A DNA stretch of 63,336 bases, the filler included, from Lenisia limosa (Eukaryota; Protista; Breviatea), in NCBI GenBank assembly GCA_001655205.1. It is 13 parts of 13 records of this genome, joined end to end, with 100 filler letters (N's around TTAATTAATTAA, not from the genome) between each part and the next. Parts side by side here need not be neighbours in the genome. Positions count along the whole stretch, not along the records: positions 1 to 12,190 come from LPNZ01007572.1; 12 more parts are not named here. One strand, written 5' to 3'. How positions within the stretch are numbered: the stretch's first letter is position 1; the number at the start of each line of letters is the position of its first letter. The notes beneath the pieces are model-generated. The model saw only the letters and a list, made by a program, of their open reading frames with translations, did no database searches and was not told the DNA's origin. The position numbers and the translations under genes were made by a program. Below are positions 1 through 12,190 of this stretch, in pieces.

Positions 1-900
1 GGTCTCTTAAATCAACCTGAGCCCCATGGTCAAGGAAGGTTTCTACCAAATCGCTATGGCCTACTTGGGGTTATTCTGAGAGGAAGAAACGAGAAATGAA
101 ACAAGATGTAATCTGGCTAAAGCCGTCCACATCATCGTTTTATCAGGGTTATCGAGAAATTTATTCTTTTTTTAGGACAAACCTTCCGCTGCGAGATAAT
201 GTAACAGTGTTCTCCCATCCTATGGTGTCAGATATACAGCTTTTTGCAGTAAAGTCTCAATTGAAACTAGAANNNNNNNNNNNNNNNNNNNNNNNNNNNN
301 NNNNNNNNNNNNNNNNNNNNNNNNNNNNNNNNNNNNNNNNNNNNNNNNNNNNNNNNNNNNNNNNNNNNNNNNNNNNNNNNNNCGGTTCAATAGTACACAA
401 AAAGCATTAATTGAAAGTGACAGATAGGTAGCGATCAGAAAAACAATAGGTTCTGACCGAAGCCGTCCATGAGACATTGACAAAAAGAGATGCCCCCACA
501 ACAGCCTCGTACCAAAAGCCCTATTCCACCTATTCAGAACCCACTCACTATCTCTCTTCAATTACCCCTACCCCAATTTCGAAAGGGGCTCTCGTTATAA
601 TGTTTCACTCAATATTTTAGAAGAAAAAAAAAACCCTTATCTTTAAGCTTTTTTGTTTCATAAATTTTCCAACTTTACTCCCCTCTTCTCTATCATNNNN
701 NNNNNNNNNNNNNNNNNNNNNNNNNNNNNNNNNNNNNNNNNNNNNNNNNNNNNNNNNNNNNNNNNNNNNNNNNNNNNNNNNNNNNNNNNNNNNNNNNNNN
801 NNNNNNNNNNNNNNNNNNNNNNNNNNNNNNNNNNNNNNNNNNNNACACGGTGTCCTGTGCGTGCATCTTCGAACAGTTCAGTCGTGGCATTCGTGTTCAT
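1..900 (-). CDS. Ankyrin-repeat protein, spliced, 3'-truncated at window edge
   Basis: Exons 219-183 and 60-1 splice (AG/GT, phase 1) to DGRTLLHYLAAEGHSDLVETFLDHGAQVDLRD, a typical ankyrin repeat. A possible first exon at 900-848 (MNTNATTELFEDARTGH) is less certain. Confidence 0.7.
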
Positions 901-1443
901 TTGCGAGGGAATCAATATGATAAGCAAGCTTCGTGTTCAACGAATAGGAATGGACTGTTTCTTCTTTTGATCTGCCGTGTTGTTATTACTGCCACTGCTT
1001 TCAGTAAATACAAAAAAATCGGATTTTTTGCGAAGTCTCTTAATAACTACGACCCGTGTGGGGGTTGTTTTGGGGTAGTTCAATTGTTTTTCGCATCACC
1101 TCTTGTATTTTCTGCCCCCCCCCCCTGTTGAAACGCCGAAATTGAAATAATAGAATGTTGGTATTTCACAAATACTAGGCTCAATGGCCTGAAACAAGAG
1201 ATAAAAAGCTAAAAACACAACTGTACACGAAAGGTTCTTGAGAGGCACCTCACCTGGAGAGTTAATGTCAAATGAGATTTTTAACAAGAGAATAACAATG
1301 TGATACATTAGCCATCTATATAGCAAAAGTTGGCCCTTTTTTAATGCATTGAATACAAGACAAGACAAACAAATGCACCTTAGGTCCTTATGTCCAAAGG
1401 TACACATCGGTTTATAAGAAAGGCAGCTTTTTTTACCCTGTCC

Positions 1444-4400
1444 TCACCTCAGGATGAGCTGGTCGATCCACTTGGCCCAGTAAGAAGTGAACCACTTCAG
1501 GAGGTCTGCTCGTCGGCTGTCTGAAAGCGATGAGAAGAATATCGGCTTTTTTGAAAAAAAAAAAAAAAGAACACTATTCTATCCTTGGTTCACTCATCAG
1601 CCCCCTCGTTATTTATAAAATATGGGTTGAAATCCTGTTGTTTTGCTGTTGAAACCTGTCGATTTATTCCTTGGCGTCCCTATGATACACTGACCGCTAT
1701 AAGTCCCGACACGGATATTGAGCTTTGTCTTTAGTCAATCGTGTCATGACTTATCGCGATTAGTCTGATTATCAAATTTCAAATAGTTTAGAAATTTCAC
1801 AAAAATAATTGAAAAATTGAAATTTGAAATAGTGTGGTGTGTAGCAATCTTTTCATACCCTTCATCTCGGCGTAATGGATGCTGTTGAGACACAGTTTCT
1901 TAATAGAGGCCAGGTCCTAGGATGTCAGGAAATCAATTATCCCTAGGTATTCATTTGTTTTCCAAAAAAAAAAAAATCAGGTGAACTGGACAAAAAACAG
2001 GTCCTATAGTAGTGTCAAAGATAAAAAAAGTTCACCGGATCCCATCATCCGAATGTCCTTGGGAAATCCCATCGCATCCCCCCTCTCACCAGTTCCCAGC
2101 CGGTAATGGCCATATAAAAGTCGTAGGCCAGAGCATGCTCAGCGTAGTCCATAATCGGTGCATCGTCCGTGGCTATGACCACCGGAAGGCCTGGGGGAGG
2201 GGAGAAAAGTAAAATTGGAAAATTTATGAAACAAAAAAAAAAGAAGCCTAAAATCAACTCTGTTGGCAGACAACACACAAGGGTTGGTAACAACAAAACA
2301 AAGCCCAGGTCAGTCGCTTCTGCAGCACCGCATCCCATCACTCTCTTGAAATTGATATTTATACTTGGTTTTGCAGAAGCACCCCCCTACCCAGTTGGAG
2401 GTAGGCACGAGCGGGATGATTGCGAAGTTCAGGGGCATATTCCAAGGCCTGGGGGGGGGGGGGNNNNNNNNNNNNNNNNNNNNNNNNNNNNNNNNNNNNN
2501 NNNNNNNNNNNNNNNNNNNNNNNNNNNNNNNNNNNNNNNNNNNNNNNNNNNNNNNNNNNNNNNNNNNNNNNNNNAAACAAGCCTGGGGGGTAAATTGGAG
2601 AAAATAAATAATGAAACAATCAACTCTGTTGGCTGATAACACACGAGTAAACAACAAAACAAAAAAAAAAGCCCTAGAATTGGGGATATGGACAGTTTAG
2701 AAGCTTACTTGGTTGGAAAGAGAGCAGACTTCAAGGCAAATATCGTACTTCTTAATGAAGTCGCTGGCAACGGGAAGATACTGAAGGATTAAGTGGGAAT
2801 GGGAAGGTACTGTCAACACTGATAACCCTAAACAAACTTGTCTCTATACAACATCTACTAACATCCACACATCAGAGACACCTCACAGTGGGTTCAGAAG
2901 TATGGTAATTTGTTTATGGTATCCCTATATATTGATTCGTTTCCCCTAGATTTCTAATGTTTAGTATTTCTCTTGTTAAAAAAAAACACCATGATTACCA
3001 ACCTTAAACAGTTCATAGCCGTGGCCAATGCGCCGAGGGTGAAGAGGAAGAGTATCAAGCAGGTTGTGGTGGAGAGGCGTGCTGATGGGGTGAGGTTCAA
3101 AACTTCATGAGGAGGTGCAAAAAAATACAAAGCAAAAAAAAAAGAGCGGAGTGCCAGCAACAAAAAACCTCCCATTCTGAAAAGAATACAGAAATGAAAA
3201 ATAAAACACGATTTTATCGGAACCCACTCCCCACATAATGCTACGAAAACGCGAAGTTTATGGTGAATGACATACTTATGGTATCCCCAGGTTTAAATTA
3301 ATGTTTTCTCGTTCCTCAAAGAAGCCCCCACCAACCTAGTTTCGCCAGCATGCAGGTAGAGAGGGAGGTCGCTACCGGGTCCGTCACCAACAAGGAGAGG
3401 AAGGTAGTCAATGAGGCCGAGCGCACCGTCCGCGTCTTCTTCCCCCACAATATCGAAGCCAAGAATGAGCTGACGGGAGTAAACTCGGAAACGGATTATG
3501 AGAGAAAAGAAGTAATATCTGTTACGAAGACGCCACTAACAATAAAGCAAAAAGCAAGGTAAAGATGAAACAAAAAGGAAACTTCATAATGAACAAAAAG
3601 AAAGTTCACAATCTACGAACGAAAAGATATTGTAATAAAGCTGAAAATAAAGCTATATCCCCGAATAGTAGAATGAAGCTATTTCCTAGAATGATCCCCA
3701 TCACGCACCTCGGGGTGCTGGGACTTGAGAAGGTTGCACTCCTCCACGAAGACTCTCATGACGTCAAGAGTCAGCTTGCGGGGGGCAGCGCAGATCAGTC
3801 CAAGGCTGCAATGGTGAGAAGGTTGGCCACAAACTTTTTCTTTTCTTTTTTATTGTCAACAACAACCACCACACCCTATTCCTTGACCATGATTGTCAAT
3901 AATCACTCAAGTTGAGAAGAATTTTTTTTATTTTGTTGATATAAAAAAAAAAACACTTTTATCACTTTCAACAAAGTTGATTTTGGGATACTCACTAATT
4001 GTCCATTACCCCCCACGAGAACTCAGGGTAGGTCTGCTTGGCTCTGTTGACGGCCTCAATGAAGAAACTTGCTTCCTTGGCCCAAGTCAGGTATTCTCCG
4101 GCGTAGTAGTAGGAGCGACCGAAGACAACTGAGGGGGGGGGGGGNNNNNNNNNNNNNNNNNNNNNNNNNNNNNNNNNNNNNNNNNNNNNNNNNNNNNNNN
4201 NNNNNNNNNNNNNNNNNNNNNNNNNNNNNNNNNNNNNNNNNNNNNNNNNNNNNNNAAAAACAAAAAAAAAAGTCCAAACTCAACTCTGTTGGCTAAGCAT
4301 CATACGAGGGTTAAAAACAACAAAACAAAGCCCAGGCTAGTCGTATGAATGAAAAAACCCAACTTCAACATTAACTAAAAATCTGCGGGGGGAGGCAAAG

Positions 4401-6994
4401 GGAAGAAAAACGAAAGAAATGTCAAGCTGATTACCAGTATACATACCTCTCATTTCAAGTCGCATTACACCGTCCGCAGCAAAGTCGAGGAAAGCTTGGT
4501 GGTAATAGTCAATGTAGACTGGTTCGAAGGAGACAAGGCCTTGGATACGGCCGAAAGTGGCCTCGAAGGGCGTCCACATCCTGGAGGTAAACGATGGAAA
4601 TTTAGATGAAAAATACTAGGTAAAATTAAAATTTATGAAACAAAAAAAAAAAGCCCAAATCAACTCTGTTGGCTGTGAAACGATGGANNNNNNNNNNNNN
4701 NNNNNNNNNNNNNNNNNNNNNNNNNNNNNNNNNNNNNNNNNNNNNNNNNNNNNNNNNNNNNNNNNNNNNNCGGTTAAACCTTTGTGTGTGCGTGCGTGTG
4801 AAAATAAAATTTAGGTTCAAAAGACGCTTAAAAAAAAAACAACATTTGAGCCATCGAAATTGGATTAAATATTTGAGATACATTTTCGGTCCAAAAGACG
4901 AGTAAATTTTTGTGTTATAAAACTCATCCTGCGAATACCCATCATGCTTAGTAATAGGCTTACATGTTATTCGTGTTGTAAATGCCTATATGCTCATTAT
5001 GCGATCTTAGTACCATGCTTACTTGGTCTTTATGTTCATCATGTCCTCGTGTACCATGAAGCGGTCAGCAATAGCCCTGTCATAAGCCTCAACATCACGC
5101 GACGCCTCACTAAAATGGTTATCATCCTAAACAAAAGTTATCATAGGTTAGGAATACCACATGTGGAAAGGGATTTCTATTTTCTTCCATGTTTTGGAGA
5201 AGTTATCTCCGGGGTTTTCTTTGTGTACAGCTCAACCGCCGGATCTTTATATCATCTTAGTTTCAAGAAAGACTTTACTGCAAAAAAAAAAGGAGAAGAG
5301 AACAAAGGGCTGTGGATCTAAGGATGACGATGACCATCCCCCCAACCGCTCAGCACTAATCAGCACCCAGTCCTTAGGAATGGTCTGGTTGGCTTCGGGT
5401 TGATAGAAGATAACGGCACCTTCCGAGATTTTGGCTGGGAAGATAAGAAATGGACTGTCAAAAGATTGTTTCTAGAAATGAGTAATAAAACAAGGTTGTA
5501 TCTGACCGAAGCCGTCCACACATTATAGATAGATATCGATATAGAGGAGGAATAAAAACATAGACATGAGAAATAAAAACATAGAGATAAGAAATAACAA
5601 GGACCCAGAAATAAAGAAAGCCCCCCTCCAACAGGTCATGGGGGAGCCAATAAGGGACCCATCAGCAAGGGTCATGGACATCGGCTCTTCATAGGCAACT
5701 TCTAGGGTGGGGGNNNNNNNNNNNNNNNNNNNNNNNNNNNNNNNNNNNNNNNNNNNNNNNNNNNNNNNNNNNNNNNNNNNNNNNNNNNNNNNNNACCAGT
5801 GAGGCAGAAGCAATAATTGGTTCCAACTGGCTGTTGGCCAAGGATTTGATTTAACCAAATTAGTGTTTGTACCTTACTAATAACAATACTAATTTTCACT
5901 GTGGCCGCAGTGCCTCGATATCCATGATCAGAGTAGGCCTTCGTATCAGTCTAATTGAGAAAATTCGATATTTTCCAAGTGGTTTACGAGCCTGCGTGAA
6001 GCCCAACGACCATCCCTGCCTACTGCCGCGGAAAATGTAGCAATTTGGCAGATAAGTGGCAGTTTTGACAAGACGGAGGGCCGAGCCAGTAGAGAGGCTA
6101 CAGTATAAAAACCAAGAATTGATACAAGTCAAGAACTAATGTGCGTTAATGTCACCGGAAAAGATTGGGGATCATGATTTTGGGTCAGATAATTAGTTTG
6201 TCATTGCCAGGCCTTCACCTTGTTCCCAAAGACTGAATTTCTATCTCTTTTCGAACAGAAGTGAAGCGGAAGTCAAATACAAGGTATGATGTATGTATGT
6301 TTATTTTTTTATCATCTGATAAGCCAATGGCATTCACATTTACAACATAAGGCAAGTGACCATCACATTTAAAGGGACACGCACATCTGTCAAAGATATT
6401 ACTAATCTGTCGGATAGTGATTACAAATCGGTTCTTGCAGCAGCTTTCAATCAAACACGCCACAACCAAATCATCATCCATCTTGAGCTATATTACGCAC
6501 GGCCCACCTGTGAGTGTGTAAATTGGCGCCCTTGGGCATCAGTTTGATCAGGTCGATGAAGGAGCCGCTGTCGATGATGGACTTAGACTCGAAGAACGAG
6601 ATGGACGCGGGGGGTTTGGGACCAGTGCGCGCAAGTTCGAGGTCAAGAAGCTCTGGAGAGGCGGTCAATGAAGCAAGATAGTATTAGAAAATGCTAGAAA
6701 ATCAATCTCTCTAACCTCTGAACTTCTCATCAGCCTTCGTTTCAGTTTCACTGAGGACAACATCGCTTGCAAACCACTGAGACGAGAGCTAGAAAAGATT
6801 GAGTTTAGTAAGAGCGGATATTCTCCCTATAACAGCCACAGATAGATACTTGATTTCAACAATTAGCATATATGGAGGCTTACGTTTGAGTAGAGATTTG
6901 AGCGCTCAAAAAAGTAAGAGTGTTTGCCACGCTTGCACTCCGCGAATTGGGTAAATACAAGGAATAGCACCACCAAAAGGAAGCGTACACTCAT
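1444..6994 (-). CDS. ADA2: Secreted adenosine deaminase 2 / ADGF-like protein (about 15 exons)
   Basis: Signal peptide MSVRFLLVVLFLVFTQFAEC (ATG at 6994). Spliced exons give LMPKGANLHTH, MWTPFEATFGRIQGLVSFEPVYIDYYHQAFLDFAADGVMRLEMR, GFDIVGEED, LYLHAGET, RIGHG, LEVCSLSNQ, LRNHP, VIATDD, LAYDFY, DLASIKKLCLNSI, then TGA at 1446-1444. Motifs are collinear with the ADA2/CECR1 family. Confidence 0.92.
2191..2345 (-). repeat. Intronic family A (type copy), forming the intron 3' end
   Basis: Consensus GAGTGATGGGATGCGGTGCTGCAGAAGCGACTGRCCTGGGCTTTGTTTTGTTGTTAYCAACCC..GCCAACAGAGTTGATTTTRGGC(T)nGTTTCATAAATTTTCCAATTTTAC(C/T)nAG. Other copies near 640, 2575, 4256, 4583, 9215, 9920, 11445, 14005, 22600, 36918, 40633, 41822, 44003, 44510, 46280, 46450, 47303, 57040. 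Confidence 0.9.
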
Positions 6995-7226
6995 ATTTCC
7001 CCCTGAACAAAAAGTCATAGTTGTAAACAGTAATCAAAGTTTCTAATTGGCCAGGAAAACAAAATTAATATATCAAATACCGCCTGCTTTCGTGTTTAGT
7101 TAACCATAATTGGTGCAAAAATTTTGTTTATATACCTGCTTTTACATTAATTACATGTGTAGCTTATAGCGAAAAAAAAATTCAAAATGAAAGTATGAAA
7201 GTAAACCAGAACAGGAGCCTTTTATC

Positions 7227-10200
7227 ATGTCAGGGCTTGTTTCAGTAGTTGGATATGTCAACAAAAAAGAAAAAATGATCCAAGTGGACACGGAAAAACA
7301 GACTATTTCGTACCACACGTAAGCTTTTTCGGTCTCCTGAGATGGCTTTTGATAACTGTGATAAATTGTTTCACATTTCAGCCCCGGAAAGGCCAACAAA
7401 GAGGTTGTTAATATCTGTGATATTCGCAAGATCGAGAAGCCTGACGGGCTTTCTGATAAGGCTACCGACGAGGAGAAGAAGAAGGTTTGGAGCAAGAGAG
7501 CGGAAAGGGTCGGGAATGGGTTGCTGTGCTTGGGCGGGGGGAATTTTGGAGGTGCTTTGGTGAAATGATGTGATCGGTGGTTTCCATTTCAGCTCGGTAT
7601 TGTTTTTGTTGGGATGGTGCTTTGTTTGAGGGTTATCATATTATTTTCAGCTTTTCCAAGATGTGAATATGTGTTTTTATGGGAAGAAGAACATGGCTGA
7701 GCTCATTTGCTCTGTCTTAGCGTTCATGTTAAGCGAAATGACTTTGGTCCAGAGTGTTTGCGTCTTTTGTGAGGGGCGCTTATGGCTAGTTTTTTTGAGC
7801 TTATGTGAATTTTTGCTTCACTTTGGTCCCTTTATAATACAATGTGGGTGTAACATGCTTCAAATGTGGTCCCATATCCACTAGTGATATAAACTTTCGA
7901 GTTGAAATGGTCATGATGCACTGAGTGTTATCTATTGAAGAGTTGAAGAAGTGGATGTTATCGTCACATCTTCTATTTGCTTCTATTTTGTGTTCAAGAA
8001 ATTTCAGCATTTTTTTAAAAAGAAAACAAAAGATAGTGCCCAATTCAACATAAAACTATGCTGCTCTTAAAAATCAGACTTTTCATCTTGGTTGCTTTGG
8101 AATCACAAAGTGTTTACTTCAGAAACAGTTTATGGAAGTGTATTTATATCCCCTCTCCATATATCTTGTGAATTCACCCCAATCTGAAAAAGCCCGATAA
8201 AGTATCGAGATTAACCTATAGTGGCTCGAGGTCCTAAACTATGTCGTTAATTCGAATTATTGTCGTGAATTCAATTTTCTGTGACTGGCTCTTTTTCATG
8301 TTAAGGTCAACTTCACAACAATTTAACTCGTAAAAAAGGACATATGAATGCGGGCATAAACTGAAAAAAAATTGCGCGAGACCCTCCCCTGTGCCCCTCT
8401 TTCAAAAAAAAGTTTTTTTTCTTTTTCTTTTTCTTTTTCTTTGTTTCCCTTCATAAACAAATAAAGTGTGTATATCTCAGAAATCTATTACTGTTTTGAA
8501 GAGGAATCGCTGATTTGGCGACCGTAAATAATTAACGATATTAATTCGAATTAACGACATAATTTTGGACCTTGAGCATAGAGATATTCATTATTTTTCG
8601 GATTAATGTGAAGCTTTATTCCAATCATTTAACCCGCTTCAGAAAGAAAGCACCGTGCAGTCCGCAATGAAGAAGCAGAAGAAGTCCAAGCTCTTTATTT
8701 ACTTCAAAAGTGGGAAGGGGTTATTATAGACCAACTTTATCATCTTTTACTCCTTTCCGCAACCCAATTCCTTACACAAGGTCATACAACAAGATGTATA
8801 TATCGTATAGACACCACTGGAGTGCCAAATTGATCCACCAGCGCTATTGGACAACATCTCAGTTCGTCACACTAAAGCACATAGTATTCATACATCCTAC
8901 ACTGACCGGGATACCAACAACAGACCAGATAATTGACAATTAACATTTACGAACAAGAAGGTGCACCACCATCCCCATCCCTAGATTTCTAATATATATT
9001 ATTTCTCCTGTTCAAGACAAACTAACGCATCAGACGACGTGCAAGATCCACTCGATCTGAAGTTCAAAGGCAGCAACTGTGATGGTGATCTCCTGGCTGT
9101 TCTTGGCGCTGTGCGGTCATGCCAAATCCTGGTGCGCGCGGGGTAGGGTGTTTTGTTGTTTAAACCCTTGTGTGTTTTTGTTGCGTAAATGTTTCCCATT
9201 AACCCCCCCGCTGGAGTGATGGGATGCGGGCCTTGTTTGTTTTGTTATCAACCCTTGTGTATTGCTAACCAACAGAGTTGATTTTGGGCTTTTTGTTTCA
9301 GAAAAATTTCCACTTTCTCCCCTCCATCTCCCTCTTCCCCTAACCGAGCCAGAACGAGCCATCAACCCTGAAAATCCTCTGTGGTACATGGAACGCCGGA
9401 GACGCCCAGGGTCCCGATGACTTGAAGGAGTGGATCCAGCCCGGATATGACCTCTATGTTCTTGGTGCCCAGGTAAGAAAAAACAAAATATAATGAAAAC
9501 TACACACCAAATCGACGAGCTTTTTGAGACCAGAGGGAAACTAGGTGTGATGATTAAGGCTTCCTGCGGTCCCAAAAAAGACTGAATTTCTCGATAAATC
9601 CTCGATAAATATCGATATTTTATCAGTCTTTTTCGGACCGCACTGTGATGATCTATCAATTCAAAGAATTTTCGCAAATAATGACATTCGTGTGAAATTG
9701 AAATGATAGACATCCATTACATAGGAATTCGAATACGCCCAGCATGAATTTTCCTATTTTTCACTATTGCAGGAATGTGAATACAAGCCCCCTACAGGGG
9801 ACTGTGGACAGCATTGGTACGGAATCCTCCAGCAAAACATCGGGCCTGTGGGGGGGTAAAATGTCTTTGTGTGTGTGGTGAATTTTTTTTTTTTGTTGTT
9901 GTTTTTGGTGTGTTTGTTGGAGTGATGATAGGTGTTGCAGAAGCAACTGGCCTGGGCTTTGTTTTGTGTTCTCAACCCTCGTGTTTTGTCAGCCAACAGC
10001 GTTGTTTTTTTTTGTTTCACAAATTTTCCAATTTTACTCCCCCCTCCCCCCAGGACTACACAGTTGTCCGTTCTAAGTCCATGGGAGCAATTCGTATGCA
10101 CATTGCAATCAAGAAAGAGCTGTTCCCCCTGGTGTCAAATGTCCAGGTATGGGTCAAATGCCAACCATTTTTGGCAATCTTACAATATTTGGTTGAGGCC

Positions 10201-12055
10201 ACTTACCATAAGGCATCATCTTCTTTCACTTTCCATATTAGGCATATTCATTTACCATAAGGCATTTTCATCGATCCCTTACCAAATTAGGCATCTTCCG
10301 AGGCTACCGGCGTGGGCCGTGTTGTACATAACAAGGGTGGTGTTGCCGTGTCCTTCAAAGTATGTCGCTTTTGATAGAATCCAATAGTGGTTCTTCCAAT
10401 ATCTCATATGAGCGTGATGGTTTGGGCGGCTTCGGCCAGATACAACCCATTTTTATTCTCATCTCTACACACATTGGATTCTCGTTTTTGATGGGTGTTT
10501 CTTTTGTACAGAGTTTAACCGCTGGATCTCTTAGATCCTAGAATAGAGACTTTGTCTTTATGATGACTTTGCTGCAGATTCTCATCTATTCAGATTTGTG
10601 AAACATCCTTCCTCATCTCTTCAGATTTGTGAAACATCCTTCCTGTTTGTAAACAGTCATCTGGCTGCTCATCAAGAGAGAATCGACGACAGAAACCGTG
10701 ACTATTTCGAAATATTGAAGGTGGGATATTTTGAGATTTTACAGTTATGGGGGAATATACTATCATGTCTTGAAGCAGCTTCGCATATACTTGTTATTTT
10801 TCTCATTTCTATTCCGTGCCTCAGCGTGTGTTGGGGAGGCACACAAAAAGCTGTGTGTACAGAGTTATAAGGCAAGATTAGGTGAAAATCTATTATTCTA
10901 TAATCCAATATCTCTTATAAGCGTGATGGTGTAGACAGCTTCGGCCAGATACAACCTATTTTTCGTTTTTTTTTCAAAGCCTCACCAAACCAGGGCATCA
11001 AAATCGGCATCCCCGAGTACGAATGTCTCTCTCAGGTGGAGAGGGGAGGGTCTCTCTCAGGTGGAGAGGGGAGGGTCTCTCTCAGGTGGAGAGGGGAGGT
11101 TCTCTCTCAGGTGGAGAGGGGAGGGTGCATTTTGGCACTAAATACTGATTTTTGGAAGATGATTAAGAGCTAGATTGTACTCATTTGAAACTATCATGCA
11201 ATATTTCAACTATATATTCCAATTTGGCTAAGATTACAAGTCTCCCCCCCCCCCNNNNNNNNNNNNNNNNNNNNNNNNNNNNNNNNNNNNNNNNNNNNNN
11301 NNNNNNNNNNNNNNNNNNNNNNNNNNNNNNNNNNNNNNNNNNNNNNNNNNNNNNNNNNNNNNNNNNNNNNNNNNNNNNNNNNNNNNNNNNNNNNNNNNNN
11401 NNNNNNNNNNNNNNNNNNNNGTATCTCCATTCATAAACTGTATTCTACTGAAGCAACTGGACTGGGATTTGTTTATGTTGTTGTTTTTTTTACCCTTGCG
11501 TGTTTCCCAATTGTTTAGCCAGCAGAATTGATTTTTGGTCTTTTTTTTGTTTCATAAAATTTCTACTTTTACTCCCTCCCCTCTTATGATTCGCCTTGAC
11601 CCCCCAGGTCGACCATGCTTTCTGGATGGGCGATCTCAATTACAGAATTGTGGGGGGGGGGGTATTTTTGAACTGAGAAACTAATTAGAAATTTACTATG
11701 AGGAACTCACAAACTTACCATATTAGGAACTTACCAAATGAGGAACTTATAAACTTACCATATTAGGATATGTCACGTGACGACTGCCTCCAAAAGATCA
11801 ATGACAAGGGTAGGGGTGGAACAATTCCGGGAGGGTGAAAGAACTTATAGCAAAAGGTCTATATCTATCATAAGCCTATTACCAGCGTATACTTCAAATC
11901 ATCTCATTGATATTTCAGATTATGTCATTGATAGTTCAGATTATGGCGGACTAATGATTACTTCAGAATGGCATTCATTGATTTTTCAGATTACCTCGGC
12001 CTGATCGATTATGACCAGCTTGTCAAGGTCAAGTCTGATGACAAGGCTTTCATTG
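7227..12055 (+). CDS. Inositol polyphosphate 5-phosphatase with a probable N-terminal PH-like region; truncated by linker
   Basis: Exons encode ILCGTWNAG...YDLYVLGAQ|ECEY, EATGVGRVVHNKGGVAVSFK, SFLFVNSHLAAHQ, FWMGDLNYRI and YDQL, the type II 5-phosphatase motifs. Upstream exons 7227-7318 and 7382-7483 splice in frame (MSGLVSVVGYVNKKEKMIQVDTEKQTISYHTPGKANKEVVNICDIRKIEKP); their link to the catalytic part is inferred. Confidence 0.85.
8224..8577. mobile_element. About 355 bp non-autonomous TIR element
   Basis: Left end GCTCGAGGTCCTAAACTATGTCGTTAATTCGAATTA matches the reverse complement of the right end GCTCAAGGTCCAAAATTATGTCGTTAATTCGAATTA (36 bp, 3 mismatches). Flanks are ATAGTG / ATAGAG. Confidence 0.7.
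11026..11125 (+). repeat. 25 bp x4 tandem repeat spanning an exon/intron donor
   Basis: TCTCTCTCAG|GTGGAGAGGGGAGGG occurs four times head-to-tail. Confidence 0.95.
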
Positions 12056-12190
12056 TGAGCGTTTTTCCTTCATATCCCTTCCACATTATTGTTCCAATCT
12101 AGATTCACAAATTAATACATAGTACATAATAACTTACTTCGTAATATAATTGTGACTTATTATTGTTGATTTCACGATGCCGTGCTCTAG

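Follow-up and report, generated by a model that had tools for sequence, protein, structure and literature searches.

Transposon ends or coincidence? The inverted repeat of a 206-nt intron in Lenisia limosa and the repeat family that it carries

The origin of new spliceosomal introns is an old question, and introners are its best-supported answer. The question arises in concrete form in a 63,336-nt stretch of DNA from the breviate Lenisia limosa (GenBank assembly GCA_001655205.1; 13 parts of 13 records, joined with 100 filler letters between parts, the whole being called the window here; positions 1 to 12,190 come from LPNZ01007572.1), where an intron at 9848-10053 begins and ends in sequences that are nearly reverse complements of each other. 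A preliminary description, made from the sequence alone, had read this donor and acceptor as the two terminal inverted repeats (TIRs) of a DNA transposon, or as ends that pair to aid splicing. Do the two ends record how the intron arose? The reading that we favour as a whole, and to which we give somewhat better than even chances, is that the inverted repeat is incidental and the intron a composite, its 3′ part being a copy of an abundant repeat, family A, which would be copied from its 3′ end.

The ends of intron 9848-10053

A 1704-nt RNA contig matches positions 8850-12190 with zero mismatches, in the blocks 9034-9130, 9352-9469, 9770-9847, 10054-10144, 10289-10359, 10625-10718 and 11989-12055. 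It skips 9848-10053 exactly, and this interval is therefore a real, precisely spliced GT-AG intron; the locus is present in two public runs of one study, one of them a DNA run, and the RNA-verified plus-strand gene around it has an intron density of about 1 per 80 nt of coding sequence. The intron reads GT-G7-TAAAAT from 9848 onward and ATTTTAC-T-C6-T-C6-AG at 10031-10053, letter for letter as in the preliminary description, and an inverted-repeat search bore out the near-perfect repeat reported there, with 13-nt arms (9850-9862 and 10031-10043) that are complementary at 12 of 13 positions (92%).

The gap-free copy of the window's contig is NODE_1332 of ENA assembly ERZ3820729 (L002 below), and comparisons were made across eight contigs of the same assembly (121,441 bp in total), which were gathered via six family-A open reading frames and two earlier look-ups. 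These 121 kb hold 172 runs of G or C of at least 6 nt, versus about 16 expected from base composition by our calculation. Run lengths are bimodal (70 at 6-7 nt and about 80 at 11-14 nt, with a sharp mode at 12); homopolymer lengths are possibly capped by assembly, and the mode could mean that sequencing or assembly cut longer tracts down to it or, alternatively, that runs of this length are a real class. Under strict patterns, there are 55 donor-type runs (GT, 0-2 nt, then six or more G) and 61 acceptor-type runs (six or more C, a few nt, then AG). When each donor run was set against each acceptor run, 45% of the cross pairs reached at least 13 nt with at most one mismatch, and the 9848 donor did so against 33% of the C-run acceptors. 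An inverted repeat above chance for this genome is not borne out.

The two kinds of run are not found together at each insertion either: an acceptor run lies 100-450 nt downstream of 8 of the 55 donor runs, versus 5.15 ± 2.17 expected from a circular-shift control (P = 0.14), and at an equal distance upstream, i.e., in a different intron, for 9 of the 55. The RNA-verified gene has 11 donors and 11 acceptors, with runs on two of each, which coincide only in intron 9848-10053, a distribution compatible with independence. Seven clear introns in the 121 kb have both runs, and their interiors are unrelated, consisting of family A, of a second repeat (family B), of a miniature transposon (family D) or of unique sequence; the 8 bases just inside the runs agree at 4.57 positions within an intron versus 4.07 ± 1.16 between introns. 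With cross pairs as complementary as this and runs that co-occur at chance level, complementarity of intron ends at the level of the genome is no greater than independent G-rich donors and C-rich acceptors give, the outcome that the preliminary description had named as refuting its reading. Where donors carry G-runs and acceptors carry C-runs, the complementary ends of a single intron are no evidence for TIRs.

Donors of this gene (8709, 9131, 9470, 9848, 10145, 10360, 10719, 11036, 11649, about 11813, and 12056) are unusually G-rich at positions +3 to +6, with GTGGGR in 7 of 11 in place of a GTAAGT-like sequence (examples from the verified gene are GTGGGA, GTGGGG, GTGGAG and GTAGGG). They hint at an altered pairing preference of U1 with the 5′ splice site in this organism, and the G-runs may be the extreme of such a G-rich donor preference of the species.

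Anatomy of family A

Searching the 121 kb with nhmmer yielded 48 copies of family A on the eight contigs, in many introns of genes that are unrelated. The conserved unit, about 140-155 nt long, is the 3′ part of introns; it begins at (TAC)GCTGGAGTGATGGGATGCGG and ends in TTTCCAATTTTAC-(T)-C-run, mostly with an AG within a few bases. This C-run-AG closes the unit in most copies, and the 3′ splice sites at 10053 and 11606 are verified by RNA. The 17 full-length copies are 81-98% identical to the consensus (84% mean pairwise identity), the pattern that a burst from a master sequence would leave. Copies of family A number in the thousands at the least. A profile built from the peptide that its open sense frame encodes matches 306 predicted open reading frames across the assembly in an exhaustive search of a representative protein library, and a word-index protein search with the peptide gave 2 matches in the sense frame and 0 in the antisense frame. 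Supported in the earlier interpretation is that intron 9848-10053 carries a member of a mobile and very abundant intron family. The run index lists family A only in the source sample, and exact-pattern scans found no match in JGI metagenomes or in IMG/VR viral contigs.

Copies of family A are alike at one end only. The 3′ end is kept in 42 of 48, only about 24 start at model positions 1-4, and the remaining ones are truncated at the 5′ end and begin at scattered positions as far as 96. Full copies, too, have ragged starts, over some 12 nt, at GCTGGAG, GGAGTG, GTGATGG (5 copies), TGATGGG (4) or GATGGG (2). Many units stand directly behind 13-40 nt of family A's own 3′ end, with the junction TTTTAC/GCTGGAG (at times with a small ACG duplication) or C-run/GCTGGAG, and a C-run lies at most 40 nt upstream of 8 of the 48 copies (versus 4.7% of random windows). 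A constant 3′ end combined with variable 5′ truncation, one hallmark of retroposons without long terminal repeats (non-LTR retroposons), is thus found in family A. Another, target-site duplications of variable length, is absent from 42 copies, in whose own flanks the longest shared word is distributed as it is between the flanks of different copies; the sole exception is the fragment at 4628-4678, with a flanking repeat of 14 nt.

The donors of family-A introns lie in sequence not common to the copies. In an alignment of ten long copies that took in what lies upstream of each, homology ended at the 5′ edge of the unit, the 40-100 nt from donor to unit being unalignable. Since the units are only about 8% diverged from the consensus, flanks that had transposed with them would still be recognisable. 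Of the 27 units whose 5′ end is complete or nearly so, about 6 have, by our count, a GT-G(6 or more) donor upstream. Of 41 open reading frames that form an independent set, each with 45 or more open codons ahead of a full unit, 12 carry a proline run, corresponding to a C-run, and 4 a glycine run, corresponding to a G-run of at least 9 nt. GTAYGC at the 5′ edge of the unit was considered as the element's own donor and rejected, as the basic junction in the larger sample is TTTTAC/GCTGGAG with small ACG slippage duplications.

Nor did the unit or the intron show other marks of a DNA transposon. Reverse-complementing the 3′ end of the unit does not give its 5′ end, (TAC)GCTGGAGTGATGGG; what the two have in common is an ATTTTAC motif in direct orientation. 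At the boundaries of intron 9848-10053 no target-site duplication was seen by eye, and a 4-nt repeat between intron start and downstream exon start is absent (GTGG versus GACT).

These features fit an introner-like element family whose copy mechanism is probably RNA-mediated, with retroposition-like synthesis as the most likely mechanism, and they do not fit a miniature transposon with TIRs. Intron 9848-10053 is a composite in which the 3′ two-thirds are a sense copy of family A, and the family-A end TTTCCAATTTTAC-(T)-C-run-AG would serve as a branch-site-like motif (a putative role), polypyrimidine tract and 3′ splice site. The first 70 nt or so, including GT-G7-TAAAAT, lie outside the repeat, the G-run of the donor being a separate feature that about one-fifth of introns have. 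The inverted repeat would then be a coincidence of two individually common end types, together with a 6-base match peculiar to the 9848 copy, and family A would spread by copying from its 3′ end inward.

Several points weigh against this reading. TAAAAT follows the donor run only in the 9848 copy, and at about 0.3% per G-run donor (our estimate from position frequencies) such a match is unlikely by pure chance, though it was noticed post hoc; four other donors have antisense family-A ends behind them, so the 5′ arm could be what is left of one. Variable target-site duplications, which retroposons normally leave, are not seen for family A, and a C-run is not known as a retroposon tail. ARAGORN and Rfam (E up to 1) found no RNA polymerase III (Pol III) promoter or small-RNA match on the unit, and precomputed Pfam hits gave no reverse transcriptase or partner long interspersed nuclear element (LINE) within the 121 kb. 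This sample is also biased toward family A, since its loci were chosen through family-A open reading frames, and the RNA-annotated introns are those of one gene, runs at donors and acceptors elsewhere having been called by pattern.

Alternative origins of the two arms

The four donors just mentioned bear on the alternative that survives best, in which both arms of the 9848 intron derive from the same mobile end (TTTTAC-C-run-A) in opposite orientations, making an acceptor when sense and a donor when antisense; a very short antisense stub at the donor and a full sense copy at the acceptor would be the outcome of two separate insertions, or of one break primed on both sides. Behind four G-run donors, at 4016 (minus strand), about 700 (minus strand), L005 14819 and L005 7082, there is sequence with significant similarity to antisense family A or to a further family, A′ (z = 4.1 to 13.2 versus shuffles). 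Among them is the minus-strand donor GTGGGGGGTAATGG at 4016, present as the preliminary description had it, and the antisense family-A end that it placed at 640-696 in the donor half of an intron does sit just inside a minus-strand GT-G13 donor, which falls in a gap of N letters (N gap) of the window and is visible in L002. Many sense copies, moreover, end in C-run-AC, the reverse complement of which is GT-G-run. From the four cases it follows that the C-run end of family A also occurs at donors, i.e., at either splice site, and in this part the earlier idea holds. At the 9848 donor itself, TAAAAT beside the run matches the end motif exactly, but the sequence past it has no similarity to antisense family A (z = 0.5). 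Once recognised copies were removed, G-run donors had no excess of the TAA/TGA end motif by our count, and, the named copies aside, their interiors cluster neither together nor with the interiors of acceptors. We consider this origin of the 9848 arms unlikely.

Quite unlikely, in our judgement, is a more specific version of copying through RNA, in which copies are made from excised intron RNA, possibly the lariat, starting at the C-run tail and running to the 5′ end GCTGGAG. The constant 3′ end of the unit would then be branch site, C-run and AG, and copying past GCTGGAG would re-enter at the branch-site motif and leave the junction TTTTAC/GCTGGAG. The cassette would close an intron when sense (C-run-AG) and open one when antisense (GT-G-run). 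If true, the sequence itself would be direct evidence that introns spread through reverse-transcribed intron RNA, a route long proposed and, to our knowledge, never demonstrated.

We now hold it to be very unlikely that GT-G-run-TAAAAT and ATTTTAC-C-run-AG form the TIR pair of a non-autonomous cut-and-paste DNA transposon whose insertion made the intron, in the way of the introners of Micromonas, Aureococcus or dinoflagellates. In favour of this proposal are the 12/13 inverted repeat, the seven introns that combine both kinds of run, and interrupted runs, G(n)-A-G(m), seen among donors and acceptors alike; of the classified introners, the TIR kind is the commonest (PMC12130899). However, the 5′ arm lies outside the conserved unit, the G-run donor accompanies only a minority of units, and the runs pair no more often than by chance. 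The introns with both runs have unrelated interiors and ends that match within an intron no better than between introns, unit and intron boundaries lack target-site duplications, and ragged 5′ ends are foreign to cut-and-paste elements.

A role for the ends in splicing is compatible with any of these origins. Pairing of G-run and C-run in the pre-mRNA would bring the splice sites together, and a terminal stem (intron nt 3-15 with 184-196) is indeed predicted in both the minimum-energy and the centroid structure. End pairing helps splicing in some yeast introns. It also aids splicing in the nonconventional introns of euglenids (PMC11282704). However, in fold energy the intron does not surpass shuffled sequence (z = -0.67), G-run donors and C-run acceptors mostly stand in introns without the other run, and RNAalifold found neither conserved structure nor covariation in the 17 full-length copies. 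Pairing of the runs as a general requirement is argued against because the two do not co-occur, and we rate it as very improbable that pairing explains the ends. The ends do not fit a Helitron by eye (5′ TC, 3′ CTRR, 3′ hairpin, A/T insertion), with no conserved hairpin predicted, and neither ends nor hairpins support an IS200/IS605-like insertion 3′ of TTAC.

Other repeats of the locus and known intron families

The features located in the window are collected in Table 1. The plus-strand host gene encodes the motif WMGDLNYR, which we take to be that of an inositol polyphosphate 5-phosphatase, of which it is typical, and a minus-strand gene at about 1400-5700 presumably encodes a protein of the adenosine deaminase/ADGF kind, both being candidate readings. 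N gaps at 273-382, 697-844, 2464-2574, 4145-4255, 4688-4770, 5714-5794 and 11255-11420 each adjoin a long G/C homopolymer or repeat. L002 supplies the sequence for all N gaps of the window, its fills including two extra tandem family-A copies and the GT-G13 donor.

Table 1. Positions of the intron, its arms, family-A copies and related features in the window
Feature	Positions	Strand	Remarks
206-nt GT-AG intron	9848-10053	+	RNA contig joins 9847 to 10054 (exons 9770-9847 and 10054-10144)
5′ arm of the inverted repeat, G7 + TAAAAT	9850-9862	+	in sequence not common to other copies; antisense family-A similarity z = 0.5
3′ arm, ATTTTAC-T-C5	10031-10043	+	part of the conserved family-A 3′ end, putative branch site then C-run; motif kept in most of the 48 copies
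Family-A unit, sense copy	9919-10053	+	nhmmer match at L002 9639-9773 (window +280); about 90% identical to consensus; supplies polypyrimidine C-run and AG acceptor
Upstream intron of the same gene	9131-9351	+	skipped by RNA contig; family-A unit 9213-9330 after a partial copy ending in C7
Foldback miniature transposon core (family D), neighbouring intron	9565-9642	+	arms 9565-9585 and 9623-9642; TIRs (GGGCTTCACTTCGG...) recur in other loci
5′-truncated family-A copy closing intron 7 in C6-AG	11445-11606	+	two further tandem copies in N gap 11255-11420
Donor GT-G11 of intron 8, unpaired G-run donor	11649-11661	+	intron without C-run acceptor or family-A copy; exon end inferred from RNA depth bins
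Family-A 3′ part, antisense to local minus-strand exon	642-696	+	C13 run gives donor GT-G13 in N gap 697-844; z = 9.5
Full family-A unit in intron of adenosine-deaminase-like gene (presumed)	2193-2343	-	donor GTA-G6 at 2387-2395
Two 5′-truncated family-A copies, head to tail	2451-2661	-	junction C6-AG/GCTTG; spans N gap
Donor GT-G6 then antisense family-A 3′ part	3923-4016	-	alignment z = 6.9 versus shuffles
5′-truncated family-A copy ending in C12-TCAG	4135-4344	-	spans N gap
Short family-A fragment between two family F 3′ ends	4628-4678	-	no other copy has a long direct repeat at its flanks (here 14 nt, exact)

Besides family A, the introns of this genome harbour several other repeats. Families F and A′, at least two others, share with family A only the end motif TTT(T/C)AC-(T)-C-run. 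Family F (CCAATATTCTTCATCGAAATTCCCTTCGTTTTAC-T-C-run) was seen at L003 6324, L005 17625 and 18845, L007 15030 (minus strand), L008 6971 and window 4600-4640 (minus strand), with only the last 8 nt or so and the C-run in common with family A; the overlap suggests a common end module that one mobilising machinery may recognise. The last intron, whose acceptor is ACCCCCAAAG, has a tract of about 50 T behind a truncated family-A fragment (L002 12030-12080, just past window position 12190). Family D occupies 9522-9642 (also L005 6850-6950 and others), with TIR TGCGGTCCCAAAAAAGACTGA and its complement here and GGGCTTCACTTCGGTTC in better copies. Several of its copies directly adjoin a G12-13 run (...GAAGCCC-T-G12), and its summed contig depth of about 267,000, versus about 35 for unique sequence, is a depth and not a copy number. 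Judged by these ends, family D is a true TIR element and a contrast to family A; TIR elements are easy to see here. A 48-nt inverted repeat at 8224-8271 and 8530-8577 (88% complementary, 258 nt between arms), upstream of exon 9034 in a long intron or spacer, is probably another.

Family B (core GGCGGCTTCGGCCAGATACAACC) occurs in five or more introns of the window, spread over three genes, and in each case has the orientation of its host gene (10378-10454, 10887-10963, 5484-5521 on the minus strand, 446-470 and 107-130). At 11025-11124, four tandem copies of the 25-nt unit GTCTCTCTCAGGTGGAGAGGGGAGG start in the last bases of an exon, so that the exon-donor junction is reiterated. Two other introns of the same gene (10200-10297 and 11698-11768) are filled with tandem repeats of 49 nt and of 16-40 nt, based on TTACCATAAGGCAT / ACTTACCATATTAGGAAC. 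On L007, two tandem tRNA-Cys(GCA) genes lie 552 nt apart (166-237 and 718-789).

The genome is thus crowded with intron-borne repeats, and the commonest family seen here lacks the hallmarks of a DNA transposon. Family A is instead anchored at its 3′ end, ragged at its 5′ end and prone to tandem arrangement, with a homopolymer end that coincides with splice signals. The majority of the classified introners are TIR elements that make target-site duplications and co-opt a splice site (PMC11282704; bioRxiv 10.1101/2020.10.14.339549; PMC12130899), and about 72% of introner families are unclassified (PMC12130899). Introners of Micromonas pusilla and Aureococcus anophagefferens, as far as PMC11282704 relates the work of Huff et al. 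2016, have TIRs and make target-site duplications of constant length (3 nt in Micromonas), the second splice site being co-opted from the duplication, and the Aureococcus-type introner can work in either orientation (bioRxiv 10.1101/2020.10.14.339549). As they are portrayed there, family A resembles them in consisting of short non-autonomous repeats in thousands of introns with one splice site borne by the element; unlike them, it showed neither TIRs nor target-site duplications when tested for both. With the introners of dinoflagellates (Symbiodinium, Polarella glacialis; bioRxiv 10.1101/2020.10.14.339549) it shares an intron-dense genome and several coexisting families, some of the dinoflagellate ones making introns in both orientations, but the 4-nt repeat of that system is missing at 9848-10053. 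The introners of Parmales sp. scaly parma, of unknown mechanism (PMC12130899), are likewise abundant and without recognisable transposon hallmarks, a likeness of description.

Retroposons offer a further comparison. Like non-LTR retroposons of the short interspersed nuclear element (SINE) kind, family A has an intact 3′ end, 5′ truncation, a homopolymer tail, head-to-tail and chimeric arrays and divergence from a single consensus, but its tail is C and not A, and no target-site duplications, Pol III boxes, partner LINE or similarity to tRNA, 7SL or 5S RNA were seen. The fungal introner-like elements described by van der Burgt et al. in 2012, a work cited in PMC11282704, are reportedly many near-identical introns at unrelated positions. 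Family A is like them in this, in its normal splicing signals, the lack of TIRs and target-site duplications, quick decay and a suspected RNA route. It differs in that its unit is the 3′ part of an intron only, falling short of the donor, in its long C homopolymer end, and in being often 5′-truncated or tandem and occasionally antisense at donors. These fungal elements, together with the introner families of unknown mechanism, are the nearest analogues of family A; its copy mechanism, if established, would give introns one more way to spread, different in its mechanism.

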